From positions 1 to 17,162 of the forward strand of contig BCKQ01000006.1 in NCBI GenBank assembly GCA_001600695.1: a DNA stretch of 17,162 bases. The letters run 5' to 3'. The position numbers and the translations under genes are program-made. The notes beneath the pieces are model-generated. The model had not been told where the DNA came from and ran no database searches. It was given only the letters and a program-made list of their open reading frames with translations. Origin of the DNA: Ascoidea asiatica JCM 7603. Its lineage: Eukaryota > Fungi > Ascomycota. Within the stretch, counting starts at the first letter, position 1. Every line of letters begins with the position of its first letter. Below, one piece after another: positions 1 through 17,162 of the stretch.

Positions 1-817
1 TTTTAGTAATAGTATTATATTTATTAGTATTTTTATTGATATTATTTTGAATTTCATGAAAATTAAAATATTTTATATATTTATTATCACAAATAGGATT
101 TTGACATGGTTTAATATCTGAAAGTGTAGAATTTATATAAAACTCAATGAGTTTTTTTGGATATTCTTTTTGAATAATAGTATTTAATTGAAAAAACCCA
201 TTCTTTGAATTTAAATATAATTTTTTATGATTTTTGAATAATTCAATAATATCTTTTTTATTGAACCTTAAAAGACATCCAGGTTCAATACAAACTAGAG
301 AATTAATAGGATTTAAATTATTTTTAAATATATTTATAATATAATGACTATAGCATTTATAACAATATTCATGATTACATTTTAAACCAATCAAATCAAT
401 ATCCTTCAAGTTGTTCTCAAAACAAATTTGACATTCATTTTTGTTTGTCTCTTTAAGCTCCATGTCATTAATTTTAGTTGACTTAGATTTATTTGGGATT
501 ATACCATTTTCAATACAATATTTGTTTATAATAAGATGATTAGTTTCAAAATTATTCTCATCTTCAGCATATAAATGATTCAAATCATCAATAATTTTAT
601 TAGAATTAAAATTATATTTATAGAATAATAATTGAAGCAAATAAATATTAGATTTTCCAAATTTTAAAGTTTCATTTAGGTTTAATATTTTTGAATTAAT
701 TTCATTTATTACATCTTCTTCAGTCATATTTTTATAATTAGGTTGAGGAATGCTCGAAACATTTTAGATAGGTTCCTTCGTTGATTTTAAAGGAAATTTT
801 TTTGCTGTTGATGACAT
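1..817 (-). CDS. RBR-type E3 ubiquitin ligase paralogue A (Ariadne/HEL1-derived), 3' end outside the window; in-frame TAA at codon 18, so either a pseudogene or started from Met31 (727)
   Basis: Not in the ORF track. Manual translation: MSSTAKKFPLKSTKEPI*NVSSIPQPNYKNMTEEDVINEINSK...LLFYKYNFNSNKII...CQICFENNLKDIDLIGLKCNHEYCYKC...CIEPGC...KPCQNPICDNKY. Collinear with the 4908-6860 protein and open from 727 to the window edge. Confidence 0.85.
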
Positions 818-1425
818 TGTTGAAAAAATAGTTAAAATAGATTAAAGTGGTTAATATATAAAAAAAAAAGTATTTAAAGTAATACTATATGTTATTAATA
901 TAGAACATTAGAAGTTTGAGAATATTAACTGAAAGGAAAAATCTGAAATCTTCGAGAAAAAAAAGCACATTTCATATTTATCTTTGTATTAACAGTATCT
1001 TTTATAATCAATTGAATATTAGCAGTTGCAAGCTTGAATTGAATGAATATAACACACATTATAATAATGTTACCATCAATAGTTAAAGCTAGCCATGAGG
1101 AAAGCTCTAACTTAAACAAAGGAGCAAAGCAAGCTAAACCTTAATCCCTGAACAACATAAATAAACACAAATAAACACAAATGCAAAATGGACAAGCACA
1201 GAAGGAGACCCGTGAAGTTGGATACAAAAACGAAACTAAAAAAAAAAAACAATACGCCATGTTTTGCCACACCGCCCAATCAACTGTGGATAAGTCTTAA
1301 AAGCCAGCTGAAAAGAAAATGGTTCTGAATCTCCAATTGCATCTTTATCACCATTGAACCTTGTAAAGGACCTGGAAATAGAAAAAATACCATTTACATA
1401 AAGACAATCTCATCAAATAACCACC
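818..1425. promoter_or_regulatory. Divergent intergenic promoter region shared by RBR-A and GAB1
   Basis: Lies between two divergent ATGs. Contains a poly(dA) tract and blocks (GGAGACC 1204-1210, GTTGGATACAAAAA 1217-1230, GCCACACC 1266-1273, TGTGGAT 1285-1291) that recur in order in the paralogous region 7269-7452. Confidence 0.6.
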
Positions 1426-2763
1426 ATGTTTATGATACCCATAGCTGCTTCAGTATTCAAACTCATTCTTCTCAATTCCTTAAATGACTTTTCCCATAAT
1501 TTTCTAGACAAGTTGGTGGAGTTCTCAACACCTGTCACAAGTTTCAAATCTCTTCAAGAGGGATTATTTCTACTTTCCACCTACAACAACTATGATTCCT
1601 CAATTGATATATACAATGGAGGAAATGTCCATAACACTCCCATATTGCTTCATTTCATGAAACTTTTCTACTCATCTACATCCAATTACAACTTCCTATT
1701 CATAAACTTTATCTACTGTTTGTCTGATTTCATAATAATATCTCAATTACTCCAGTTAAATGATTATTTTCAGACGAGTTCCAACAAGAATAAGAAGAAC
1801 AATAAATCCCGATCAAATTTAATCTTGATATTGTTTTTGAGTTTGAATCCCTTGAGTATACTATGTTTGTTATCCAAATCTACAATAATATTCTCCAATC
1901 TATTCATCACAACCTCAATATATTCAATAATTATTCTAAAGTCTCCAATATTGGCTTCAATTTCACTAGGCATAAGCTCATACTTATCATATTATCCATT
2001 GTTTTTGGTGATTCCATTAATATCCATATGTTTGAATTTGAATGAATCCAGGAAGCTGAATAAATCCGGGAAGCTGAAGCTGAATTTGGCTTTGGTATGT
2101 AAAATATGTTTTTATTTCACTGCAACAATACTATCCTTATTATATTATTCATATTACTTGAATGATAGTAACTGGAACTTTATTGACTCCACTTATGGTA
2201 CCATAATCTTTTTCAGAAAAAATCAACCCAATATTGGTCTATGGTGGTATTTCTTCACTGAGATTTTTGAATTCTTCAATGATTTCTACATTGGTGTATT
2301 CAACATATTCAATTTGATATTTGTGATTCCATTGACAATTAGATTTCATAATATCAATTCAGGTTCAATTCCAGCTGGTTTATTTTCAATGGTCATCAAT
2401 CTAGGATTAATCAATTTAACTAAATCATATCCTTCATTAAATGATTTTAGTTTTATTTTAAATCTAATAGTAATTCTAATATTAAATTTGGAGAATTTGA
2501 TCAAATTTTTGAAATTTCCTATTTTTTCAATTCTTATTATTTTACATTCTGTTATTTTAAGTCCGATTTTTTATTATTTATGGATTTACAGTGGAAGTGG
2601 TAATTCGAATTTCTTTTATGCAATCAATTTGGTTTTTGCAATTGGGTTTGGTAAATTGTTGACTGATTCAATATGGAGTTTCTTAGCTATTGAATATTCG
2701 TCTTCCAAGAAAAACACATCAGGTGAATTGAATTTGAATAAACTTAGTTTGACATTGATATAG
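1426..2763 (+). CDS. GAB1: GPI transamidase subunit PIG-U / Gab1
   Basis: 445-aa polytopic membrane protein with PIG-U family motifs VEFSTPVTSFKSLQEG, PNIGLWWYFFTEIFEFF, KSYPS and YLWIYSGSGNSNFFYAI. An in-frame TAA at 1399-1401 fixes the start at 1426. Confidence 0.95.
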   Translation: MFMIPIAASVFKLILLNSLNDFSHNFLDKLVEFSTPVTSFKSLQEGLFLLSTYNNYDSSIDIYNGGNVHNTPILLHFMKLFYSSTSNYNFLFINFIYCLSDFIIISQLLQLNDYFQTSSNKNKKNNKSRSNLILILFLSLNPLSILCLLSKSTIIFSNLFITTSIYSIIILKSPILASISLGISSYLSYYPLFLVIPLISICLNLNESRKLNKSGKLKLNLALVCKICFYFTATILSLLYYSYYLNDSNWNFIDSTYGTIIFFRKNQPNIGLWWYFFTEIFEFFNDFYIGVFNIFNLIFVIPLTIRFHNINSGSIPAGLFSMVINLGLINLTKSYPSLNDFSFILNLIVILILNLENLIKFLKFPIFSILIILHSVILSPIFYYLWIYSGSGNSNFFYAINLVFAIGFGKLLTDSIWSFLAIEYSSSKKNTSGELNLNKLSLTLI

Positions 2764-3073
2764 TACCTAGATAATTTTCATAGAAATAGAAGTAGAAATA
2801 GAAACAAATATAATGATTATTGTAGAGTAGGCAAGTTATCGTGTTTCATATATTCTTTATTTTGAACGATATCCGAATAGAGACCGTGTTTGCGGTGCTG
2901 CTCTTGCTTTTGCTTATCGAGCATTGCAAATTGAAGCTGAGAAAAGCGATAAATGCAAGTGGTGAATGAGTCTGCTACCGGTACTAGTAGGTAATGAAAT
3001 GATCAATTGAATGACAATGGATAAAGAAGAGAAAGAACAGTAACAAGATTTAGAATAAGAGTCATTCATCAAA

Positions 3074-3856
3074 ATGGCAATGGGACAGATTGCATTGGTT
3101 GTTTATAGAGGAGCCTCGGTGGTGGGATTCATCATCTTCATTGCCTTTTGCACTGTAGCTCCATTGGATATTATAATTAGAGTCAAAGCTGCCCACTACA
3201 ACTCTGCCTTCAATACATTCATTGCAATCATTTCATGTGTGGTGTTTGTGGTGTTTTTTCTTTTCTTGACCAGTTACAGGTTATTCAATTTGAGAAAGAC
3301 ATTGCAGGAGATTCCCAAGAGATACATTCCATTGGAAGAAAACGATCTCCCGCATGATATGTTGGTTAGTATAAAGGAAGCAATGGTGAAGAGTGGACGA
3401 ATATACAATTACTCTGTCAATCCAGTGATCAGAGATAAGAAAGATATTAGGAGTGGAAATAATAAAGAAACTCCCAGAGGTGTTATCCAACATGATGGTC
3501 TTAGTAATCCGGTGATCAACAATATCTGTTTATCTGAGAAAGAGATCATATCAGATGTGCTACCTACGAGTTTACCATACGAGGAAGTTCTTATTTCCAT
3601 TGGTAAAACAATGGCCGAGAGTAAAGTGGTGGATATCAATGGAGTTAAAATGTCATTCCGAGAAATGATAAGTGATAAACACAATAATCTCAGTAATTCC
3701 AATAATCATACTAGTCATAATGGCTGTAATGACGATAATGGTCAGAAAGCGGAAGAGCTTATTCTGTTGTATGAAAGACTAAGATTTTCCAATAAGCCCA
3801 TAAAGCAAGATGAATTTCTTATATTGCTTGACAAGTTGATAAGTCATGGTGTATGA
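3074..3856 (+). CDS. DLT1: Defect at low temperature protein 1 (Dlt1 family), two N-terminal TM helices
   Basis: Recognised motifs: PLD...NSAFNTFI between two hydrophobic helices, LQEIPKRYIPLEENDLP, IQHDGL and C-terminal LYERLRFSNKPIKQDEF. Confidence 0.88.
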   Translation: MAMGQIALVVYRGASVVGFIIFIAFCTVAPLDIIIRVKAAHYNSAFNTFIAIISCVVFVVFFLFLTSYRLFNLRKTLQEIPKRYIPLEENDLPHDMLVSIKEAMVKSGRIYNYSVNPVIRDKKDIRSGNNKETPRGVIQHDGLSNPVINNICLSEKEIISDVLPTSLPYEEVLISIGKTMAESKVVDINGVKMSFREMISDKHNNLSNSNNHTSHNGCNDDNGQKAEELILLYERLRFSNKPIKQDEFLILLDKLISHGV

Positions 3857-3974
3857 TTTATGAATGAAGAGTATATTTTTGTTTATGAGGTTATGTAAAT
3901 TTGGGTGATTTTATTCAAACCTATGTTCGAAATGGTAATCGGAGTCTGGTAAAACTTACGATTTTTGATTTTTC

Positions 3975-4014
3975 TGAATGTAAAGATGAATGTAAAGATG
4001 AATGTAAAGATGAA
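3975..4014 (+). repeat. 12-bp tandem repeat (TGAATGTAAAGA) x3.3
   Basis: Read directly; lies in the DLT1 3' flank. Confidence 0.9.
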
Positions 4015-4907
4015 ATGGAGGATGAAATGAAATTCCTGTATTTTAATTTAAATTTTATTCAAATAAAGAGTTTCGTTGAATTATACTTGTTTTACTATTT
4101 TATTGAGAAAGCCAGACACTTTGTTGGTGGTTGATGGAGTCTGACATTCTGTTTATAACTTGAGAAAAAGGCAGGTACGAAGTTTAACAAAAGTCTCTTT
4201 TAATGTATTCAGTTTTGGACTGTATGACAACGTAGTTTTTTTTTAGTTACATTCGACACATTGAAGTCCTGGGATTGAAGCCAAAAGGCAACAATTCATT
4301 TTATTTAGTTTCTATGGACTTTTGCATTTTTTGCATTTATTTAATTTTCTTCGATATTTATTTACAGGTGCATTAATGAAATACTAACAAAACTTTAGTT
4401 TTTTTTCCATCAATTTTATACTATGTGGATAAACTTTACAAACTTTGTTCTTATAATGTAAGGATTTAAGTAGATTAAGATTAATTTTATCAATTTATTA
4501 GCTTCAAAAATTAATTTCTTATCTACGGTTCGAAACAAAGAGCAATGTATTCTAAGCTTTTTGTTTTCAATTTAATCTAATATTACATTATTCCAAAGAT
4601 TTTTTACATCTCAGATTGTTTTTCAAAATTATATTTGCAGTATTTGAATTTGGAATCTTAGAAAATGGAAAACTTTCTGCATAAAGTATTATTACAAAAG
4701 TTGAAGAGCGCTTGATATTTCTTATTAGAAATGACTCTGTAGTAATTATTTACTTTATATAATCGAGTACTTTAGTTTTAATATCAAAATGAGTGTATCA
4801 TTAAATTGGATTCAATATGAATGGTTGTATTATTTATATATAAATGTGAACTATAAAATTGCACCAAAAACAAGTTTTGAATCACTCATATTCAAATTTT
4901 TTGAATA

Positions 4908-6860
4908 TCAGACAGAATTGGAGTTATTTTGAACATTCTCTTTTCGACAATAAATTAAGTAGAAAAATAGAAGTCCTATTAAAAGAGTGAAAGCTTCAAT
5001 AATTGCAATGATGAAATGTTTCATAGCCATATTCTCAAAGAAGTGAAGAAAAGCGAAAATTGAAGTTATAATAACCAGAACAATACTATTATATATTGCA
5101 AACACAGGTACTTCGAAATATAATGCCACCATACCAACTAAGAAACAAAGTGAAAGAAAAATAGTAGCTAGATAATCAGTACCCTCGAACTTCAAAACCA
5201 AAATAAGATAAAACAAAAAAAAGTTAAGAATTAAATAAAGAACTCCTAACTCCCACTTTACACGAGGGTCTCCAACATGATCAGGATGGTTGTACTCAGA
5301 CTTTCTAAAAATCATTCTATGAATGATGAAATTTTCTAACTTTGGATATCTTTTATATTTACTATTTGCAATAGAGAAATATGAATCATAAGCATCTTTA
5401 TAAATATCAGGAATTTTAAAATATTTTACTCTATCCCAATAAAAAGAAGTTCGACAAAAAGTACATATCATATGAGCACATCCTTTATTTTTTTCAATTA
5501 ACTTCTTACATGATGGACATTCTTTACAAAATAAATGTTTATATCTCAGAGAATTTAAAAATTCAGGTGATAAATTCCTATTAACTTGACAACATTTTTG
5601 ATTTGAATTATTCGATTTGGAAGATATTTCATCACAATTAAAACAAAATTGATGATTTTTAGAACATTTCACTATAAATACATTTGAATAGGACTCTGGA
5701 TTATTATTATATACTAAACTATCACCACCTATGATTCTGTTATTGTGATTTTTATTTTGATTATTATTAATATTATCAATATTTATTGGATTACTATAGA
5801 TTGAGTGGATTTCACTTTCATTTGGACTTACTGATAGATTAGCTTCATCATCAGTATTATTATTGGCGGTAATATTATTGTTATTGGAATAGTCAGTAAC
5901 AAAAGTACTACCATTGATAGTTAGGTGATTATACTCAATGTTAGTCTGAGTGCTATGATTAGACTGAATTTCTATATTTCTAGAATCCCTACTGTTATTA
6001 TTGGTATCGATATTGTTATTCTTGATATTGTTATGGGTATTATTAGTGTTATTAGTATCAGCGCTATTAGTATTGTTATTGATTGTATCTTGAATGTCAG
6101 AAAAATTGAAATATTTTATATATTGATCACAAACAGGATTTCGGCAAGCTTTGATATCCGAATCTGGAGAATTTATGTAGAACTCAATAAGCTTTTTTGG
6201 ATACTCTTTCAGGATTATGAGATTTAATTGAAAGAGATCATTTTCAGGATTGAAGTATAATCTTTGATGATTTTTGAATAATTCAATGATATCATTGTTA
6301 TTGAATTTTAAATTACATCCAGGTTCTATACAAACTAGAGAATTAATAGGATTTAAATTATTTTCAAAAATATTTATAATATAATGACTGTAGCATTTAT
6401 AACAATATTTATGATGACATGTTAAACCAACCATATCAATATCCTTCAAGTTGTTCTCAAAACAAATTTGACATTCATTTTTGTTTCTCTCCTTAAGCTG
6501 TTTAGGATTACCTTTAGATGGCAAATCTGACTTAGTTTTACCTGGAATAAGACCTTTTTCAGTAAAATATTTTGTAGAAATGGCATATTTATCTTCATAT
6601 GTGTTTTTTCCAGCTTGAATTTTTCTTAAATCTTTGACAATTTTATCTGAGTTGAAATTATATTCATACAATAATATTTCAACTTTATTCAAATATGCTT
6701 TTCCAAAATTTAAAATCTTATTCAAGTTTATTATCTTTGATTGAATTTCTTTTAATACATTCATATCGGTCATGTTTTTGTATTTAGATAATGAAGTATT
6801 TGGTTCATTTGCAACTGGTTGCATTACAGGTAATAAAGGAATTGGTGCTATTGCTGACAT
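4908..6860 (-). CDS. RBR-type E3 ubiquitin ligase paralogue B (Ariadne/HEL1-derived) with Asn-rich IBR insertion and four C-terminal hydrophobic helices
   Basis: 650 aa. Ariadne-like UBA-type segment (EILLYEYNFNSDKIV), RING1 C130-C182, IBR C239/C244...C399-x3-H-x-FCFNC, RING2-like CPSCKKLIEKNKGCAHMICTFC (catalytic-position C461, H463), hydrophobic helices about aa 536-638. Confidence 0.92.
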   Translation of the reverse strand: MSAIAPIPLLPVMQPVANEPNTSLSKYKNMTDMNVLKEIQSKIINLNKILNFGKAYLNKVEILLYEYNFNSDKIVKDLRKIQAGKNTYEDKYAISTKYFTEKGLIPGKTKSDLPSKGNPKQLKERNKNECQICFENNLKDIDMVGLTCHHKYCYKCYSHYIINIFENNLNPINSLVCIEPGCNLKFNNNDIIELFKNHQRLYFNPENDLFQLNLIILKEYPKKLIEFYINSPDSDIKACRNPVCDQYIKYFNFSDIQDTINNNTNSADTNNTNNTHNNIKNNNIDTNNNSRDSRNIEIQSNHSTQTNIEYNHLTINGSTFVTDYSNNNNITANNNTDDEANLSVSPNESEIHSIYSNPINIDNINNNQNKNHNNRIIGGDSLVYNNNPESYSNVFIVKCSKNHQFCFNCDEISSKSNNSNQKCCQVNRNLSPEFLNSLRYKHLFCKECPSCKKLIEKNKGCAHMICTFCRTSFYWDRVKYFKIPDIYKDAYDSYFSIANSKYKRYPKLENFIIHRMIFRKSEYNHPDHVGDPRVKWELGVLYLILNFFLFYLILVLKFEGTDYLATIFLSLCFLVGMVALYFEVPVFAIYNSIVLVIITSIFAFLHFFENMAMKHFIIAIIEAFTLLIGLLFFYLIYCRKENVQNNSNSV

Positions 6861-7138
6861 TTTTGAGTAAAATACAGTAGATTAAAGTGATTATTATTTG
6901 AAAAAGTATTTAAATAAATGAAAAAAAGTTATTGAGAATGCCATCTGGAAAAAAAAAATTAAAATTTTAAAGAAGATAAAGCATATTTATATAAATTTTA
7001 TATATACAGTATATTCATATTTTATTTTATATCATGAACGTTGATTGTATTTTATTTTGGTAGAATTTATAGTATATCCTATTGGAACTTATCAAATGTT
7101 TAGTATATATTCGTTATTCTCTGACTAAAAAGAAAACT

Positions 7139-7221
7139 TATTAAAATTTAAAATATAAATATACATAAATATATATAAAATATAAATAAAATATAAATAA
7201 AAATTAATAAAAATAAATAAA
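7139..7221. repeat. Almost pure A/T low-complexity tract with repeated AAAATATAAAT units
   Basis: One C in about 83 bp. AAAATATAAAT at 7150-7160, 7177-7187 and 7188-7198. Confidence 0.8.
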
Positions 7222-7236
7222 GGTCTATTAGAAGCG

Positions 7237-7308
7237 TAACTGTTAATACTGATAGAATCAAGAGCAGAGGAGACCAAACTTTAAATCAAGTTTTTAAATC
7301 GGGACTCT
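7237..7308 (+). promoter_or_regulatory. Conserved upstream block of RBR-B (inverted homologue at 10332-10403)
   Basis: TAACTGTT, GAGACCAAA and CGGGACTCT occur in the same order and the same 72-bp span as the reverse complement of 10332-10403. Confidence 0.55.
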
Positions 7309-7382
7309 GATTCTAGAAGGAAAGCAAACAAACCGGGCCGAGTGTTCTGCAGTTAGATGCGAGATGGTTTTGGATCCATATC

Positions 7383-7520
7383 GTTGGTTACAAAAAGCAC
7401 ACGCGCCACACCAGCCAACCATAAATTGTGGATGAGTCTGAACAACAAGCTGGAGGAAAACGAAAAAGAGGAAAGCTTCTTCTTTTACCTCACTCTCACA
7501 ATCACAGGCATCAAATTCTC
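7383..7520 (+). pseudogene. Relic of the GAB1 promoter plus a possible ~27-bp scrap of GAB1 coding sequence
   Basis: GTTGGTTACAAAAA, GCCACACC, TGTGGATGAGTCT and AGCTG match 1217-1310 in order. 7494-7520 (TCTCACAATCACAGGCATCAAATTCTC) weakly resembles GAB1 1523-1552. Confidence 0.6.
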
Positions 7521-7573
7521 CATTGGAGTAGTTCATTGAGAAGAATGGTAGAAGTGAGAACAAGAATGGTGAA

Positions 7574-7700
7574 ATGGAATAGGAGAAGATTGCTTTAGTT
7601 GTTCAGAAAAAGCCTCAGTGGTAGGATTTATCATCTTCATTACCTTTTGTGCCATTGAATATTAGAATCACAAAGCTGCCTAAATTTTACTTTCAATATA
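7574..7700 (+). pseudogene. DLT1: DLT1 pseudogene, 5' fragment
   Basis: Aligns to 3074-~3217: ME*EKIALVV / frameshift / ASVVGFIIFITFC...KAA*...FN versus MAMGQIALVVYRGASVVGFIIFIAFC...KAAHYNSAFN. Stop at codon 3, a frameshift and small deletions. Confidence 0.9.
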
Positions 7701-8004
7701 CTTTCTGGTGAAAGATATTGATTGTTTGCTTCGTTAATATTGTATCGTAACATATCTGTATTTGTGGAATTTAAATTTATGTAACGATAGAAATTGATAA
7801 TTGGAATTTATGACAATATTTATCTTCAGAATACTCACTGTAACTGTATCTTTGAAGTTTTTTGGTAAAAAAAAAAAATTCAAGTGGCCTGCGACAATCG
7901 AAAAATCCATGAAGTTCAAATTTTCATTTATTTGATTTAAAAACATCGAAAGGCTCAGAAATTTGATTGTGTTCTTTGAAAAAAATAAAATTAAGGCACA
8001 GGCT

Positions 8005-8037
8005 GAAGAAAGCCAGAAGAAAGCCAGTAGAAAGCCT
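8005..8037 (+). repeat. 11-bp tandem repeat (GAAGAAAGCCA) x3, third copy degenerate
   Basis: GAAGAAAGCCA GAAGAAAGCCA GTAGAAAGCCT read directly. Confidence 0.85.
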
Positions 8038-8640
8038 CGCGGTGTTGAGTATATTTTAAAAATTAACTTAAATGAGTATTGATAACAGATTTAATCAATC
8101 TTCTCAATTTTTGCACAAATTTTAGATCAGAGAAATGATATGAAGAAATAAAGAAAGGATCTTGAATAAGTTAACTTTCTATGCTTTGGGGAGAATTTCA
8201 ACAACAAAGCTAAATAAAAAAAAATTCTTGAACCAATTTGGATTTTTATTACTGTGAATTAACGCTAACCCTTTAAATATAGCTATAGAAAGTTAACTGA
8301 GGAGGCTATAATATAGTAGTAATTCAGCCGACTTTTATTATTGATAATATTTTTTAACATAAATTATAAACTAGATAATTTCAAAATAATTTTGTCATTA
8401 TAAGATACATTTGCTAAATGATGATGACATCTCTTTAGAAAGCTGAGATATTATTTTTTTTCAAATAATGTTTTTGAAAATTTACCATATCTTAGGAATT
8501 ATTTAGATTTTGAGGGTACCTTACTGAGTGCATCTATAAAATACATTGATTACCTTCAATATTACTGATGTAATGTTTTCCATTGACTCAGAATATTTAT
8601 ATTCAAGTAGTTAAAATATCCAAAAGTTGTAAAATTTATA

Positions 8641-9237
8641 ATGAAAGTATATTATATTGGAATTATCAAACCCCTTAGTGAAAAAAGTGGTATTGAATTA
8701 ACCAGTGTTGGAAGTCTTGACTGGTCTTCTTCAAATATTTATCGAAAGTTTATGAAAAATAATGCAATATCTAAGTTTCCATTAAAGTCAAACTCAAGAT
8801 TTTCACTGAAAGAAGGAGAATTAAATTTTCATTTTTATTTCAATTCAGAATTTAATTTTTCAAAAGAAAGAAATCTTGTTCAAGATCAGTTAAATTATGA
8901 AATTCAAAAAAAAAATTTTCTTTGTATTGTACTTATTACAGATTTAGAATATCCAATATTTGAAGCTCATTCTTTATTAAAAATAATCTTGGATGATTAT
9001 TTTTTTCATTTATTCTTATCAGATCAAAAAGATGATTTACATAATATTTTTCATGAAAAGGATGTTCCAAAATCTTTAGAATTTCTTAAATTATATAAAT
9101 ATTTAGATAATTATCAGAATCCTGAAAATGTTACTAATTTTATGGAAACTTCACTGGTTTATAGTGTAGATTATGTTTGTCAAAATGTTAAAATCAATGA
9201 TATAATAACTTATGAAATTTTAGATCCCATATTCTGA
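8641..9237 (+). CDS. YKT6: Divergent Ykt6-like longin-domain protein lacking a recognisable R-SNARE core and C-terminal CCAAX box
   Basis: MKVYYIGIIK...IELTSV, VLITDLEYPIFEAHSLLKIILDDY and LYKYLDNYQNP parallel Ykt6 MRIYYIG...[30 protein letters not shown] and LDTYISKYQDP (recalled family sequence). No RGEKLD motif; ends ...LDPIF. Probably a paralogue, not the functional orthologue. Confidence 0.8.
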   Translation: MKVYYIGIIKPLSEKSGIELTSVGSLDWSSSNIYRKFMKNNAISKFPLKSNSRFSLKEGELNFHFYFNSEFNFSKERNLVQDQLNYEIQKKNFLCIVLITDLEYPIFEAHSLLKIILDDYFFHLFLSDQKDDLHNIFHEKDVPKSLEFLKLYKYLDNYQNPENVTNFMETSLVYSVDYVCQNVKINDIITYEILDPIF

Positions 9238-10331
9238 TAAACAATTATAGCAACAATTCCAAAAAAAAGTAGAAAAATTTTATTGGAAAAATATAATCAA
9301 GAAAGAAGTCTTTGTTTTTTTACTTCCCTATAAAAACTATCTTTTTTAAAAAATCAGTTCTTACAGTGATCTCGTAGAAAAACACTGAAATGTTATAGTT
9401 TGAAAGCTAATTTTCTCAGTGATATAATGAAAAAAATATACTTTTTTGTTGAACAAGTTCATTTTTATAGTTTAATAAACACCCTTTTTGTTTACAATTA
9501 AACTAATTATTTTATCCAAGAATAGTTTTCATTTATGAAAATATGTAATTCATGATTTATTCAAAGACTTTAACATCTCTGAGATGTAAAAATATGACTA
9601 ACTATTCATATTAACTGGCATTTTGAAAGCCATTTTTAAACTTTTTATCTGCCTATATAAAATTCAATCAATTTGCAGTTCTGAGGAAGCTTAAACGCTT
9701 GAATGCTTAATTATATGGATGTATTGAAGATCTGAAACTAAAAAAGTTTATTATCTTTTCTTTTATTTTATTTCCATACATTGAACTTTCTAAGTAGTTT
9801 AAAATAGTAGTTTCCTTAATGCAAAAATTATTTACTTTCATTATTTTTGTTTCAATTTATCGAGGTTCATCAGTTTGTTACCAAATTGATTTTGAATCTC
9901 AAGGTTTATATAACAGAAATACTTCTAAGTCAATGCTAATCAAACATTTTCTTTCAAGTTGAAACAACTGTTCAATCAGCTTTAAAAAAAGCTTTATATG
10001 ACTTAAATTATTTGGATGATCTTAAAATAATAAATTGGATTAACGTAATGATCTAGTTTATTTCTATCTTAATTCATGTTTGGAGACTTAATAAGGTTTG
10101 AAGAATTTTCGAAAATGTATAATATGATATGCATTAAATCAAGAATTTTAGAAACCAGAGGAAAAAGCTTTGGGTTCTCTTTTCCCGAATTAAAAGTCTT
10201 ACAACGTTTGAACTTTTTTAGATTTTCTTTATTATGCTAAAATGGTTCCACTTTATTGAAAATTTTGAAGTGATTGATATCAATTAATTAATCAATTTTT
10301 ATTTCATAATCTTCTAAGAAACCCAAAATTT

Positions 10332-10403
10332 AGAGTACCGTTAACTTAAAGTAGACTACTACTTAACTTTGGTCTCTCCAATTTTTTATTAAATAAACAG
10401 TTA
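10332..10403 (-). promoter_or_regulatory. Conserved upstream block of RBR-C (inverted homologue of 7237-7308)
   Basis: Minus strand reads TAACTGTT...GAGACCAAA...CGGTACTCT. Confidence 0.55.
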
Positions 10404-11242
10404 TTCCATAATTATTAAATGACTTGTATTTACCAAGTCTGCTTAATTGAATTGAATTGTTCATTATCCTTTAGCATAGAGTTTATACTGTTCTGCAGGA
10501 GATCCGCAATTTCGGTCTCGTTTTTTCCTTGGCAAATTTCCAGCAGGGTCCAAAAAGCGGTTATATTCACAAAAACGTTTCTGCATGCACAGTAGCTTAT
10601 ATTTTATGCCGGTTCCCGGATTAAGCCTCGAATTTCCAAGAGGCTTCGACTTCCGAAAGTGTCCGGTTAAGGTTTTCTCTGTTCTAAAATTCATAGCCAC
10701 TTCAACCATAAAATAGATCCAAAATGTCCCTTCTTTGAAACCACTAGAATATTCAAAACGATTATTGAACTGGAATTGAATGTGCTAAGAAACAACAAGG
10801 TGCCGTTGAAAGCTTTCTTCACCTTGCCTCCTTATTGTAGGATTTTTTGAATGCAATTACTTTCATCATTTTATAAGACAAAAAAAAAGCTTTTCAGTTA
10901 CTTTTAATTGAATTGAATAATAATAAATTCATTTTTGACTGAAAATATAGAACTATTATTTCAATATTCCGAAAAAATGAATAAATAATGTATAAGTAGT
11001 AACAGCCCCTTTGATATTTCTATTGGTAAGCATATAAAAATTATTCAAAAAAAATGAAGTTAATTCGCAATTATAATTAACTCTGAAATATAAATAGTAT
11101 AAATATTCTGTTTCTCAAACCATCATATATCGACTTAAATATTATAATATTGATTATATATATATATCAATCAATTGAGAAAAAGAAAATAATAAAAACA
11201 ATAAATACTTTTAGAATAATCAATTAATTAGATAAGATCAAA

Positions 11243-12826
11243 ATGTCTTTAGATTCTGTTTTACCACATTATTCAGAAAATTTTCCATTATCTGAAATTG
11301 CAAATTCAAATATTACAAATATACCTAGGGAAAATAATCCAAGATATAAAAATTTATGTGAAAAGGATGTATTAGATGAAATTGAAAATAAAAAATTAGA
11401 ATTGAATAAATTTTTAAAATTTGAGGAAAATGATTTAGATTCTATAGAATTGCTTTTATATTCATTCAATTTCAATTCGGATCTAACTATAAAAGAAATT
11501 AATAATTTAAATGATATACAAAAACTAGAATCAAAGCCAGAAGATAATAAAGATAATGAAATTGAATTACTCAAAAGCCATCAAAAGTTTTTTGTATCAT
11601 ATGGTATAATTCCAGATTATAATCAATCAAACTCAAAAATTGATTTAGGAAAAAGTAATTTCAATGATATAAATATAATAAATCACAAAGAATGTACAAT
11701 TTGTTTTGAAGAATATGAAAATTCAATGGATTTTGTATCATTAAAATGTAATCATAAATATTGTTATAGTTGCTACTATGAATATATTAAAACTTTATTT
11801 CAAAATAATTTAAATCCAATCATTTTATTAAAGTGTTTAAATCCATATTGTAAATTAAAATTTAATAAAAATCAATTAATTAAACTTTTTGAAAATAAAA
11901 AATTTTTTTTTAAAAATGATGCTAATGAAGTTGAAAAGATCAAAAAACTAAATGATTTAATCACAAATAGTTATAATAAAAAACTAATTGAGTTTTATAT
12001 AACTTCCTTGAATTCAAATATAAAATATTGTCCATATCCTGATTGTAATAAGTTTTTAAAATATCATAATTATAATTCAATACTAGAAAATAATGAATCA
12101 AATTTAAATTCCCAAAATGAATTTATTGTCAAATGCCTTAATAATCATCAATTTTGTTTTAATTGTAATTCAATTTCAAATCTTGAAAATAAATCAAATT
12201 TATCATGTTGTTTACCAAACAAAAATGTTGATATCAATTTCCTAAAATCTTTACATTATAAAAGTAAATTTTGTAAACCTTGTCCATATTGTGCAAAATT
12301 AATTGAAAAAAATAGAGGTTGTGATATAATAGCTTGTGTATCATGTAAGGGAAAATTTGGATGGTCAAAACAAGCTTATTTCGAAATTCCTAATGAATAC
12401 AAAGAAGTTTATCTAAATTATTTTACTAAACCGGAAAATAGGATGACTTATCCAAATCATAATGAACGAACTAGAAGTGCAAGATATATTGAAAATTTTT
12501 ATCTTCTCCTAGGCTTGGCAATGATATTAGGACTTGCAGGTATTTGTTCTATGATTCCTACATTATATTGGTATGGAATCGAAAAAAATAAAATAAGTTT
12601 AATTGCTTTTATAAGTTCTGCAGAATTATCTTTAACTTTTTTGGGTTTCCAATCATGTAGTATGAATCATGGTAATTGTTTCTATTTTTTAATTTTGTTT
12701 TCCAAGATTTCAAGTTCTATTATTTGTGGAATTTATCATTCACCTTTATGGGCATTAATACTCTCTGTTATTCAAACAAGTTTTTTAATTCTGGCAAAAA
12801 TATACATATCTTATTTTCAACATTAA
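11243..12826 (+). CDS. RBR-type E3 ubiquitin ligase paralogue C (Ariadne/HEL1-derived) with four C-terminal hydrophobic helices
   Basis: 527 aa. ELLLYSFNFNSD segment, RING1 from C151 (CTIC...CNHKYCYSC...CLNPYC), IBR CPYPDC...CLNNHQFCFNC, RING2-like CPYCAKLIEKNRGCDIIACVSC (C360, no His), hydrophobic helices from about aa 419 to the end. Confidence 0.92.
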   Translation: MSLDSVLPHYSENFPLSEIANSNITNIPRENNPRYKNLCEKDVLDEIENKKLELNKFLKFEENDLDSIELLLYSFNFNSDLTIKEINNLNDIQKLESKPEDNKDNEIELLKSHQKFFVSYGIIPDYNQSNSKIDLGKSNFNDINIINHKECTICFEEYENSMDFVSLKCNHKYCYSCYYEYIKTLFQNNLNPIILLKCLNPYCKLKFNKNQLIKLFENKKFFFKNDANEVEKIKKLNDLITNSYNKKLIEFYITSLNSNIKYCPYPDCNKFLKYHNYNSILENNESNLNSQNEFIVKCLNNHQFCFNCNSISNLENKSNLSCCLPNKNVDINFLKSLHYKSKFCKPCPYCAKLIEKNRGCDIIACVSCKGKFGWSKQAYFEIPNEYKEVYLNYFTKPENRMTYPNHNERTRSARYIENFYLLLGLAMILGLAGICSMIPTLYWYGIEKNKISLIAFISSAELSLTFLGFQSCSMNHGNCFYFLILFSKISSSIICGIYHSPLWALILSVIQTSFLILAKIYISYFQH

Positions 12827-13148
12827 GTTTCTACTTGATAACTCAACCCTATATTTTACCCTATTATTATTTTAAATATTTCTTTTTGTTTCTAATACAC
12901 TTTTTTAACCTTGATAAATTCCTAGACACTTAAATTAGTTCCCAGTGGTGCGATTGATCTTGGGTTATCAGACCTAAAAATAAGATTAGTAATGCCAAAT
13001 TAAGTTATAAACAGAATGTCAGACTCCATCAACCACCAACAAAGTGTCTGGCTTTCTCAATAAAATAGTAAAACAAGTATAATTCAACGAAACTCTTTAT
13101 TTGAATAAAATTTAAATTAAAATACAGGAATTTCATTTCATCCTCCAT

Positions 13149-13188
13149 TTCATCTTTACATTCATCTTTACATTCATCTTTACATTCA
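13149..13188 (-). repeat. Mirror copy of the 12-bp tandem repeat
   Basis: Reverse complement of 3975-4014, same copy number. Confidence 0.9.
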
Positions 13189-13306
13189 GAAAAATCAAAA
13201 ATCGTAAGTTTTACCAGACTCCGATTACCATTTCGAACATAGGTTTGAATAAAATCACCCAAATTTACATAACCTCATAAACAAAAATATACTCTTCATT
13301 CATAAA

Positions 13307-14089
13307 TCATACACCATGACTTATCAACTTGTCAAGCAATATAAGAAATTCATCTTGCTTTATGGGCTTATTGGAAAATCTTAGTCTTTCATACAACAGA
13401 ATAAGCTCTTCCGCTTTCTGACCATTATCGTCATTACAGCCATTATGACTAGTATGATTATTGGAATTACTGAGATTATTGTGTTTATCACTTATCATTT
13501 CTCGGAATGACATTTTAACTCCATTGATATCCACCACTTTACTCTCGGCCATTGTTTTACCAATGGAAATAAGAACTTCCTCGTATGGTAAACTCGTAGG
13601 TAGCACATCTGATATGATCTCTTTCTCAGATAAACAGATATTGTTGATCACCGGATTACTAAGACCATCATGTTGGATAACACCTCTGGGAGTTTCTTTA
13701 TTATTTCCACTCCTAATATCTTTCTTATCTCTGATCACTGGATTGACAGAGTAATTGTATATTCGTCCACTCTTCACCATTGCTTCCTTTATACTAACCA
13801 ACATATCATGCGGGAGATCGTTTTCTTCCAATGGAATGTATCTCTTGGGAATCTCCTGCAATGTCTTTCTCAAATTGAATAACCTGTAACTGGTCAAGAA
13901 AAGAAAAAACACCACAAACACCACACATGAAATGATTGCAATGAATGTATTGAAGGCAGAGTTGTAGTGGGCAGCTTTGACTCTAATTATAATATCCAAT
14001 GGAGCTACAGTGCAAAAGGCAATGAAGATGATGAATCCCACCACCGAGGCTCCTCTATAAACAACCAATGCAATCTGTCCCATTGCCAT
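13307..14089 (-). CDS. DLT1: Defect at low temperature protein 1 (second, identical copy)
   Basis: Identical translation to 3074-3856. Confidence 0.88.
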   Translation of the reverse strand: MAMGQIALVVYRGASVVGFIIFIAFCTVAPLDIIIRVKAAHYNSAFNTFIAIISCVVFVVFFLFLTSYRLFNLRKTLQEIPKRYIPLEENDLPHDMLVSIKEAMVKSGRIYNYSVNPVIRDKKDIRSGNNKETPRGVIQHDGLSNPVINNICLSEKEIISDVLPTSLPYEEVLISIGKTMAESKVVDINGVKMSFREMISDKHNNLSNSNNHTSHNGCNDDNGQKAEELILLYERLRFSNKPIKQDEFLILLDKLISHGV

Positions 14090-14399
14090 TTTGATGAATG
14101 ACTCTTATTCTAAATCTTGTTACTGTTCTTTCTCTTCTTTATCCATTGTCATTCAATTGATCATTTCATTACCTACTAGTACCGGTAGCAGACTCATTCA
14201 CCACTTGCATTTATCGCTTTTCTCAGCTTCAATTTGCAATGCTCGATAAGCAAAAGCAAGAGCAGCACCGCAAACACGGTCTCTATTCGGATATCGTTCA
14301 AAATAAAGAATATATGAAACACGATAACTTGCCTACTCTACAATAATCATTATATTTGTTTCTATTTCTACTTCTATTTCTATGAAAATTATCTAGGTA

Positions 14400-15737
14400 C
14401 TATATCAATGTCAAACTAAGTTTATTCAAATTCAATTCACCTGATGTGTTTTTCTTGGAAGACGAATATTCAATAGCTAAGAAACTCCATATTGAATCAG
14501 TCAACAATTTACCAAACCCAATTGCAAAAACCAAATTGATTGCATAAAAGAAATTCGAATTACCACTTCCACTGTAAATCCATAAATAATAAAAAATCGG
14601 ACTTAAAATAACAGAATGTAAAATAATAAGAATTGAAAAAATAGGAAATTTCAAAAATTTGATCAAATTCTCCAAATTTAATATTAGAATTACTATTAGA
14701 TTTAAAATAAAACTAAAATCATTTAATGAAGGATATGATTTAGTTAAATTGATTAATCCTAGATTGATGACCATTGAAAATAAACCAGCTGGAATTGAAC
14801 CTGAATTGATATTATGAAATCTAATTGTCAATGGAATCACAAATATCAAATTGAATATGTTGAATACACCAATGTAGAAATCATTGAAGAATTCAAAAAT
14901 CTCAGTGAAGAAATACCACCATAGACCAATATTGGGTTGATTTTTTCTGAAAAAGATTATGGTACCATAAGTGGAGTCAATAAAGTTCCAGTTACTATCA
15001 TTCAAGTAATATGAATAATATAATAAGGATAGTATTGTTGCAGTGAAATAAAAACATATTTTACATACCAAAGCCAAATTCAGCTTCAGCTTCCCGGATT
15101 TATTCAGCTTCCTGGATTCATTCAAATTCAAACATATGGATATTAATGGAATCACCAAAAACAATGGATAATATGATAAGTATGAGCTTATGCCTAGTGA
15201 AATTGAAGCCAATATTGGAGACTTTAGAATAATTATTGAATATATTGAGGTTGTGATGAATAGATTGGAGAATATTATTGTAGATTTGGATAACAAACAT
15301 AGTATACTCAAGGGATTCAAACTCAAAAACAATATCAAGATTAAATTTGATCGGGATTTATTGTTCTTCTTATTCTTGTTGGAACTCGTCTGAAAATAAT
15401 CATTTAACTGGAGTAATTGAGATATTATTATGAAATCAGACAAACAGTAGATAAAGTTTATGAATAGGAAGTTGTAATTGGATGTAGATGAGTAGAAAAG
15501 TTTCATGAAATGAAGCAATATGGGAGTGTTATGGACATTTCCTCCATTGTATATATCAATTGAGGAATCATAGTTGTTGTAGGTGGAAAGTAGAAATAAT
15601 CCCTCTTGAAGAGATTTGAAACTTGTGACAGGTGTTGAGAACTCCACCAACTTGTCTAGAAAATTATGGGAAAAGTCATTTAAGGAATTGAGAAGAATGA
15701 GTTTGAATACTGAAGCAGCTATGGGTATCATAAACAT
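14400..15737 (-). CDS. GAB1: GPI transamidase subunit PIG-U / Gab1 (second, identical copy)
   Basis: Identical translation to 1426-2763. Confidence 0.95.
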   Translation of the reverse strand: MFMIPIAASVFKLILLNSLNDFSHNFLDKLVEFSTPVTSFKSLQEGLFLLSTYNNYDSSIDIYNGGNVHNTPILLHFMKLFYSSTSNYNFLFINFIYCLSDFIIISQLLQLNDYFQTSSNKNKKNNKSRSNLILILFLSLNPLSILCLLSKSTIIFSNLFITTSIYSIIILKSPILASISLGISSYLSYYPLFLVIPLISICLNLNESRKLNKSGKLKLNLALVCKICFYFTATILSLLYYSYYLNDSNWNFIDSTYGTIIFFRKNQPNIGLWWYFFTEIFEFFNDFYIGVFNIFNLIFVIPLTIRFHNINSGSIPAGLFSMVINLGLINLTKSYPSLNDFSFILNLIVILILNLENLIKFLKFPIFSILIILHSVILSPIFYYLWIYSGSGNSNFFYAINLVFAIGFGKLLTDSIWSFLAIEYSSSKKNTSGELNLNKLSLTLI

Positions 15738-16345
15738 GGTGGTTATTTGATGAGATTGTCTTTATGTAAATGGTATTTTTTCTATTTCCAGGTCCTTTAC
15801 AAGGTTCAATGGTGATAAAGATGCAATTGGAGATTCAGAACCATTTTCTTTTCAGCTGGCTTTTAAGACTTATCCACAGTTGATTGGGCGGTGTGGCAAA
15901 ACATGGCGTATTGTTTTTTTTTTTTAGTTTCGTTTTTGTATCCAACTTCACGGGTCTCCTTCTGTGCTTGTCCATTTTGCATTTGTGTTTATTTGTGTTT
16001 ATTTATGTTGTTCAGGGATTAAGGTTTAGCTTGCTTTGCTCCTTTGTTTAAGTTAGAGCTTTCCTCATGGCTAGCTTTAACTATTGATGGTAACATTATT
16101 ATAATGTGTGTTATATTCATTCAATTCAAGCTTGCAACTGCTAATATTCAATTGATTATAAAAGATACTGTTAATACAAAGATAAATATGAAATGTGCTT
16201 TTTTTTCTCGAAGATTTCAGATTTTTCCTTTCAGTTAATATTCTCAAACTTCTAATGTTCTATATTAATAACATATAGTATTACTTTAAATACTTTTTTT
16301 TTTATATATTAACCACTTTAATCTATTTTAACTATTTTTTCAACA
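15738..16345. promoter_or_regulatory. Mirror copy of the GAB1 / RBR-A divergent promoter region
   Basis: Reverse complement of 818-1425. Confidence 0.6.
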
Positions 16346-17162
16346 ATGTCATCAACAGCAAAAAAATTTCCTTTAAAATCAACGAAGGAACCTATCTAAA
16401 ATGTTTCGAGCATTCCTCAACCTAATTATAAAAATATGACTGAAGAAGATGTAATAAATGAAATTAATTCAAAAATATTAAACCTAAATGAAACTTTAAA
16501 ATTTGGAAAATCTAATATTTATTTGCTTCAATTATTATTCTATAAATATAATTTTAATTCTAATAAAATTATTGATGATTTGAATCATTTATATGCTGAA
16601 GATGAGAATAATTTTGAAACTAATCATCTTATTATAAACAAATATTGTATTGAAAATGGTATAATCCCAAATAAATCTAAGTCAACTAAAATTAATGACA
16701 TGGAGCTTAAAGAGACAAACAAAAATGAATGTCAAATTTGTTTTGAGAACAACTTGAAGGATATTGATTTGATTGGTTTAAAATGTAATCATGAATATTG
16801 TTATAAATGCTATAGTCATTATATTATAAATATATTTAAAAATAATTTAAATCCTATTAATTCTCTAGTTTGTATTGAACCTGGATGTCTTTTAAGGTTC
16901 AATAAAAAAGATATTATTGAATTATTCAAAAATCATAAAAAATTATATTTAAATTCAAAGAATGGGTTTTTTCAATTAAATACTATTATTCAAAAAGAAT
17001 ATCCAAAAAAACTCATTGAGTTTTATATAAATTCTACACTTTCAGATATTAAACCATGTCAAAATCCTATTTGTGATAATAAATATATAAAATATTTTAA
17101 TTTTCATGAAATTCAAAATAATATCAATAAAAATACTAATAAATATAATACTATTACTAAAA
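16346..17162 (+). CDS. RBR-type E3 ligase paralogue A, second copy, 3' end outside the window; TAA at 16397-16399, open frame from Met at 16436
   Basis: Mirror of 1-817. 242 uninterrupted codons from 16436 to the edge encode the UBA-like segment, intact RING1 and the start of the IBR. Confidence 0.85.

Follow-up and report, generated by a model that had tools for sequence, protein, structure and literature searches.

Introduction

On chromosome XIV of Saccharomyces, inverted repeats of ~4.2 kb bound a flip/flop (FF) region in which non-allelic gene conversion is proposed to act between the repeats and inversion to arise as a by-product (Salzberg et al. 2022, PMC9731477). These repeats contain genes, are near-identical and homogenised, include no mating-type (MAT) genes and are left unresolved by short reads, and the inversion has no known phenotype (PMC9731477). 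Here we describe a locus in the yeast Ascoidea asiatica JCM 7603 that shares this organization. The window, by which we mean the whole stretch of DNA analysed, is the first 17,162 bases of contig C6 (BCKQ01000006.1; 1.15 Mb), and it consists of an inverted repeat, IR1, whose gene-containing arms surround a single-copy core. We conclude that IR1 probably represents a surviving part of an old inverted segmental duplication, homogenised and kept identical by repeated ectopic gene conversion. Where the Saccharomyces FF repeats hold sporulation genes and are separated by a 24 kb spacer, the A. asiatica arms hold the housekeeping genes GAB1 and DLT1 together with half of an RBR ligase gene, and the spacer is 8.8 kb. 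A further difference is that a second homogenised repeat encloses the first, and that both lie in a visibly decayed larger duplication.

Centromeres of Candida tropicalis also consist of an inverted repeat around a unique core, and the repeats of the inverted-repeat centromeres of this species and of Komagataella phaffii are non-coding. The same plan is described for K. phaffii (10.1101/056382). Kilobase near-identical inverted repeats likewise characterize the FF1 and FF2 MAT systems of Ogataea polymorpha, Ascoidea rubescens and K. phaffii, FF2 having two repeat pairs, as does the locus described here (PMC6692504). Mammalian sex-chromosome palindromes (Caceres et al., as cited in PMC9731477) combine arm-to-arm conversion, recurrent inversion and old duplicates that stay identical; the present locus resembles them on a far smaller scale and in a yeast. 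A literature search of incomplete coverage found no description of this A. asiatica locus.

Results

Geometry of IR1 and its place in the assembly

Our material was one short-read assembly of one strain. A position-by-position comparison of 1-4161 with the reverse complement of 13002-17162 returned zero mismatches, and the first mismatch falls at 4162/13001. The initial annotation, made from the letters of the window, had described arms of at least 4.16 kb free of substitutions and indels (a nonsense codon and a 12-bp tandem repeat included), sharp inner boundaries at 4161/13002 and a core of 8.84 kb, all of which our comparison bears out. The last 4161 bases of contig C19 (272977-277137) are a third identical copy of the arm. 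The end of C19 falls exactly on the inner boundary of IR1, which is most simply explained if the two contigs overlap by the left arm and the assembler broke at the repeat. The two contigs were joined by script (C19 position = window position + 272976; negative coordinates lie on C19), and on the joined sequence the arms reach -290 and 17453, giving an arm length of 4,452 bp.

In both copies of IR1 an N stands at each of four shared positions (-94, -19, -18 and 0, with their mirrors), and these are the only single Ns in 108 kb; the window stops at 17,162 because both copies have an N at 0/17163. That the N positions are identical means that the assembler built a single consensus for the arm and placed it more than once; the match between the arms is that of a collapsed consensus rather than of two independent readings. 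Four single Ns also occur in multi-copy retrotransposon sequence at C19:1-1300, inside which C19 starts, and we infer that such Ns mark differences among collapsed copies. For other JCM yeasts the RIKEN pipeline used 3-kb mate pairs, which are shorter than the IR1 arm (PMC6597690). If this pipeline also served for A. asiatica, as seems likely, the contig break would be due to arm length and would carry no information on orientation, and the way round in which C6 shows the core may then be arbitrary.

These features invite the explanation that one real arm was written twice, or that diverged arms were flattened to a consensus: the arm is present three times, contigs break at it, both copies share their four Ns, single Ns also mark the retrotransposon at the other end of C19, and the probable mate pairs were too short to cross it. 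We nonetheless regard an assembly artefact as very unlikely. Both core ends meet the same arm end while two different flanks meet its other end, an arrangement that needs two copies, and ambiguities were recorded at just four sites in the 4,452-bp arm and nowhere else in it. Moreover, decayed collinear remnants outside the arms (see below) cannot come from an assembler, and IR2 and a 368-bp patch (both described below) are exact although they are resolved.

IR1 lies within a decayed inverted duplication

A second inverted repeat, IR2, encloses IR1 and pairs -2899..-1119 with 24066..25846. It is 1,781 bp long, of which 1,588 bp are exact, and its eight differences all lie close to the ends; it sits in N-free contiguous sequence on both contigs. 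IR2 contains a HAD phosphatase gene and the 3' end of a Dicer-like gene. The latter encodes an 801-amino acid protein with RNase III and dsRBD domains (Dicer/Rnt1-like) at C6:21974-24379, of which the last 314 bp are within IR2, and the left side has an internally deleted remnant of this gene at 76-80% identity (BLAST).

Mirror homology is not confined to the two repeats. Ten mirror blocks, from -6859 to 4727, match 27367 to 11225 in strict reverse order. Identity in the blocks that are not exact is 67-80%. Among them are remnants of RBR-E, the Dicer-like gene and RBR-D, which scored 197, 154 and 122 against shuffled maxima of 50, 46 and 52, respectively. The RBR-D remnant lies at 4400-4727, indicating that the old duplication once extended inside the present inner boundary of IR1. 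RBR-A and a LYR-family gene are kept on the left only; RBR-E, the Dicer-like gene, a septin gene, a prenyltransferase beta subunit gene and RBR-D are kept on the right only; HAD, GAB1, DLT1, RBR-B and the outer tRNA-Met are kept on both sides. Read from these remnants, the locus appears as an inverted segmental duplication spanning ~34 kb from which genes were lost on alternate sides, and in which only the jointly kept parts are identical.

This structure bears directly on the suggestion in the initial annotation of a very recent inverted duplication, here of a 4.45-kb arm. Zero arm differences and a sharp inner boundary are what such an event would leave, but diverged mirror homology, its order unchanged, runs on beyond the arms in both directions, and IR2, itself near-identical, is separated from IR1 by diverged sequence. 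Nor can unrelated RBR copies account for the Dicer-like remnant or for IR2. A single recent duplication is therefore contradicted by the sequence beyond the arms, and we consider it largely refuted.

Each of three identical tRNA-Met(CAT) genes (C19:266837, C6:18096 and C6:26252) has an RBR gene or remnant upstream of it; the unit that pairs RBR with tRNA was copied three times.

Identical tracts end in diverged sequence

We next consider the edges of the identical stretches, with synonymous (dS) and non-synonymous (dN) divergence calculated by NG86, which is rough on such AT-rich genes. The outer edge of IR1 lies within RBR-B/B', where the match is exact to -290, ~81-85% to -383 and 66-74% thereafter; just outside IR1, the B and B' tails have a dS of ~0.4, and by this rough estimate dN is at least as large as dS. 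At the other three of the four IR1 and IR2 boundaries, homology itself stops at a deletion. A third tract joins RBR-A (C19:268055-268422) and RBR-C (6071-6438), which share an exact 368-bp match inside otherwise diverged genes: 122 codons without a change, flanked by regions at dS 0.66 and 0.33. RBR-B and RBR-C are linked by shorter patches of 40-52 bp. At least three identical tracts are thus present (IR1, IR2 and the 368-bp patch), two of them in resolved N-free sequence, and this pattern cannot be produced by a single recent duplication, nor by an assembler.

Together, the diverged collinear mirror homology flanking the arms and the second and third homogenised tracts provide internal evidence that the repeat is old and that its identity is due to homogenisation, which supports the further suggestion of the initial annotation that recurrent recombination keeps it identical. 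We propose that a block of RBR ligase, tRNA-Met, LYR, HAD, Dicer-like, septin, prenyltransferase beta, GAB1 and DLT1 genes was duplicated head to head, as the collinear remnants suggest, and that different genes were then lost on each side, a loss shown by the retained gene sets. The jointly kept copies, 9-25 kb apart, would act as mutual repair templates, and non-allelic gene conversion would overwrite differences up to the nearest deletion breakpoint, giving IR1 (4.45 kb) and IR2 (1.78 kb). It is most likely that the surviving identical stretches copy each other. By analogy with the proposal for Saccharomyces chromosome XIV (PMC9731477), a minority of conversions would resolve as crossovers and invert the intervening segment, a crossover in IR1 flipping the 8.8-kb core and one in IR2 flipping ~25 kb.

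A few recent long conversion or break-induced copying events could instead have recreated the GAB1-DLT1 and HAD copies within the decayed duplication, with no continuing homogenisation. The tracts are exact over kilobases, and a single copy event could have been primed by the RBR homology that flanks IR1 near its two ends; however, there are at least three separate tracts, and together with the steps at their edges (~96% at the ends of IR2, ~85% outside IR1) they indicate that the events differ in age. We judge one-off copying unlikely, though less so than any other alternative weighed here. Several points count against long-continued conversion as we propose it. It is not fully separable from a few recent long tracts, and the collapsed consensus could hide a few differences between the arms. 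The collinear blocks were picked by hand, and several contain RBR paralogues, which have matches outside this order as well. As A. rubescens offers no synteny, the ancestral order could be read from internal remnants only: in that distant relative, whose GAB1 is 50% identical, GAB1 and HAD have different neighbours and no second copy within 10 kb, and S. crataegensis showed no synteny around either gene.

Consequences of inverting the core

Under the conversion model that we favour, the core can probably flip, and by analogy with known systems it is plausible that both orientations occur. The DLT1 stop codon lies 305 bp inside the arm and that of RBR-D 175 bp inside the core. Since the arms are identical and neither inner boundary of IR1 is crossed by a gene, a flip would alter no coding sequence, protein or proximal promoter. 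The flanks are gene-dense for at least 45 kb on each side, with no ORF (open reading frame)-free gap above 2.9 kb, and the contigs run on for 273 kb and 1.14 Mb before they end; no silencer is therefore evident near the locus. The initial annotation had proposed looking in the outer flanks for a telomere or centromere that could silence one end; no telomere and no centromere-like or gene-poor region was found within 45 kb, the search having had no mapped Ascoidea centromere to compare with. As a flip would bring no local change, there is no evident silencer and the core holds only paralogues and gene remnants, inversion, if it occurs, is best read as a by-product that is probably neutral rather than as a switch.

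The same observations speak to the possibility of a programmed or selected invertible cassette, acting through a position effect on core genes or by shuffling RBR halves. The nested repeat pair, the mosaic patches of the fast-evolving RBR family and the MAT flip/flop of the congener A. rubescens (PMC6692504) could be taken to suggest one. Against it stand the absence of a MAT gene and of any gene or promoter across the inner boundary, and the gene-dense flanks far from contig ends; we hold such a cassette to be very improbable. A. asiatica is a heterothallic diploid with an AGE1alpha-MATalpha1-STE20alpha allele (PMC6692504), and the gene order on contig C50 fits this allele, with MATalpha1, the sole alpha-box match found, between an ArfGAP-PH gene (AGE1) and a kinase gene (STE20). 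Consistent with the statement in the initial annotation that the core lacks MAT genes, no HMG-box or homeodomain match was found on C6 or C19. In contrast to FF1 and FF2, the locus has no MATa or MATalpha genes in or at the ends of the potentially invertible region, the defining feature of those systems, and neither a telomere nor a recognisable centromere was found within 45 kb. The analogy drawn in the initial annotation does not hold, MATalpha1 lying elsewhere in a heterothallic species and a flip moving no gene to or from any silencer found.

Its second analogy, with inverted-repeat centromeres of the K. phaffii or C. tropicalis type, fares no better. Kilobase arms do surround an AT-richer core (25% GC against 29% in the arms). 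However, arms and core are genic, with intact genes in both, the arms have no counterpart on other chromosomes, and the largest ORF-free gaps in the core are 1.8 and 2.0 kb. A centromere is the least probable of the explanations considered, and we give it almost no weight.

Genes of the arms, core and flanks

Feature coordinates are collected in Table 1. The gene identities proposed in the initial annotation agree with ours: GAB1/PIG-U by Pfam, DLT1 by Atlas features, and two RBR ligases with a weak longin match in the core.

Table 1. Coordinates of features at the A. asiatica locus (window positions unless a contig is given)
Feature	Coordinates	Strand	Remarks
Left arm of IR1	1..4161	+	true start 290 bp further out, C19:272686
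Right arm of IR1	13002..17162	-	extends on C6 to 17453; N at 17163, 17181-17182, 17257
IR2, left copy	C19:270077-271857		
IR2, right copy	C6:24066-25846		
Mirror blocks outside and between the repeats	-6859/27367, -6734/26849, -6416/26642, -6266/26436, IR2		
Mirror blocks, continued inward	-1135/22891, -754/17847, IR1, 4400/12312, 4549/11402		
RBR ligase B, 5' part	1..817	-	in-frame TAA 766-764; possible restart ATG 727
GAB1/PIG-U, GPI (glycosylphosphatidylinositol) transamidase subunit, left copy	1426..2763	+	Pfam PF06728, E 2.7e-97
DLT1-like gene, left copy	3074..3856	+	ESM Atlas features 0.92-0.94 to DLT1 clusters
Core	4162..13001	.	8,840 bp; single copy in assembly; potentially invertible
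Decayed mirror remnant of RBR-D	4400..4727	-	74-76% to 12312-12228 and 11402-11225
RBR ligase C	4908..6860	-	
Remnant of DLT1 5' end	7572..7680	+	76%
Diverged longin (Ykt6-like) paralogue	8641..9237	+	longin-only ORF; weak, below Pfam cut-off
RBR ligase D	11243..12826	+	
DLT1-like gene, right copy	13307..14089	-	
GAB1/PIG-U, right copy	14400..15737	-	
RBR ligase B', 5' part	16346..17162	+	reaches ~17990 on C6; same 5' TAA as B
RBR family members	4908-6860, 11243-12826, 1-817; C19:267003-268841; C6:26654-28648; C1:1776377; C2:2392677		

GAB1 is essential in Saccharomyces cerevisiae, and selection against the spread of a broken copy may help to preserve the tract. Its closest match is A. rubescens GAB1 at 50% identity, and the contig collection searched held no exact record of it. 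The neighbouring arm gene is designated DLT1-like on moderate evidence (Atlas features 0.94), its protein having no Pfam match. RBR-B extends onto C19 as a 501-amino acid ORF ending in a hydrophobic tail. Its TAA codon (mirror 16397) and the 12-bp tandem repeat occur in both arms, and conversion could have spread the stop codon to both copies. Relative to RBR-B, RBR-B' has one extra A near C6:17545, with which its ORF ends at 370 amino acids and a diverged hydrophobic tail is split off; the extra base is either a real frameshift or a homopolymer error.

The RBR ligase family has at least eight members, six of them at this locus, and the members that we read have a hydrophobic tail at the end and no Ariadne domain. 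With RBR-D as query, a word search scored 8000 candidates, none of which reached E <= 1e-12; this does not establish absence. Within the core, the DLT1 5' remnant goes back to an earlier tandem duplicate of the RBR-GAB1-DLT1 unit, and no GAB1 remnant was detected at 6900-8600. Three conventional longin genes lie elsewhere in the genome, and one of them has a short DNA match to the core longin at C6:605159-605356. For the centre of the core (6860-11240), an additional ancient mirror symmetry could not be reproduced; the comparison yielded nothing but short AT-rich matches.

Other repeats were seen away from the locus. Two tandem genes 75% identical over 880 bp lie 14 kb to its left (C19 ~254980-259560; joined -17995..-13417) as a further local duplication, and an exact 91-bp direct repeat with 142-bp spacing lies at a gene start (C6:39976-40208). 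A 485-N scaffold gap at C19 ~231080-231770 falls between identical inverted 101-bp tRNA-like sequences, and a 17-bp unit repeated in tandem where C6 ends (~1153100-1153196), far from the locus, is possibly the telomere repeat of the species.

Discussion

The A. asiatica locus combines a gene-containing near-identical repeat with signs that this repeat is old and homogenised, and on this internal evidence it would work like the Saccharomyces FF region. The mechanism is ordinary; what the locus adds is the nested second repeat and a readable history. A broader reading, in which A. asiatica has unusually active ectopic conversion and many gene-containing invertible segments, and nested inversions passively shuffle membrane RBR ligases, seems to us improbable. 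If it were true, a flipped core would place RBR-A and RBR-C in opposite orientation, and a crossover in the 368-bp patch would swap their C-terminal parts, membrane tails included.

For users of the genome, the practical gain is a link between contigs C19 and C6 through the repeat, together with a warning that the assembled orientation of the core is not to be trusted. More generally, the locus would be a further, independent case among yeasts of a non-MAT inverted repeat held identical by gene conversion. MAT flip/flop switches, of which the congener A. rubescens has one, use this kind of structure, and the readable parent duplication in A. asiatica suggests how such repeats originate, namely as islands of retained genes in a duplication that is losing genes.

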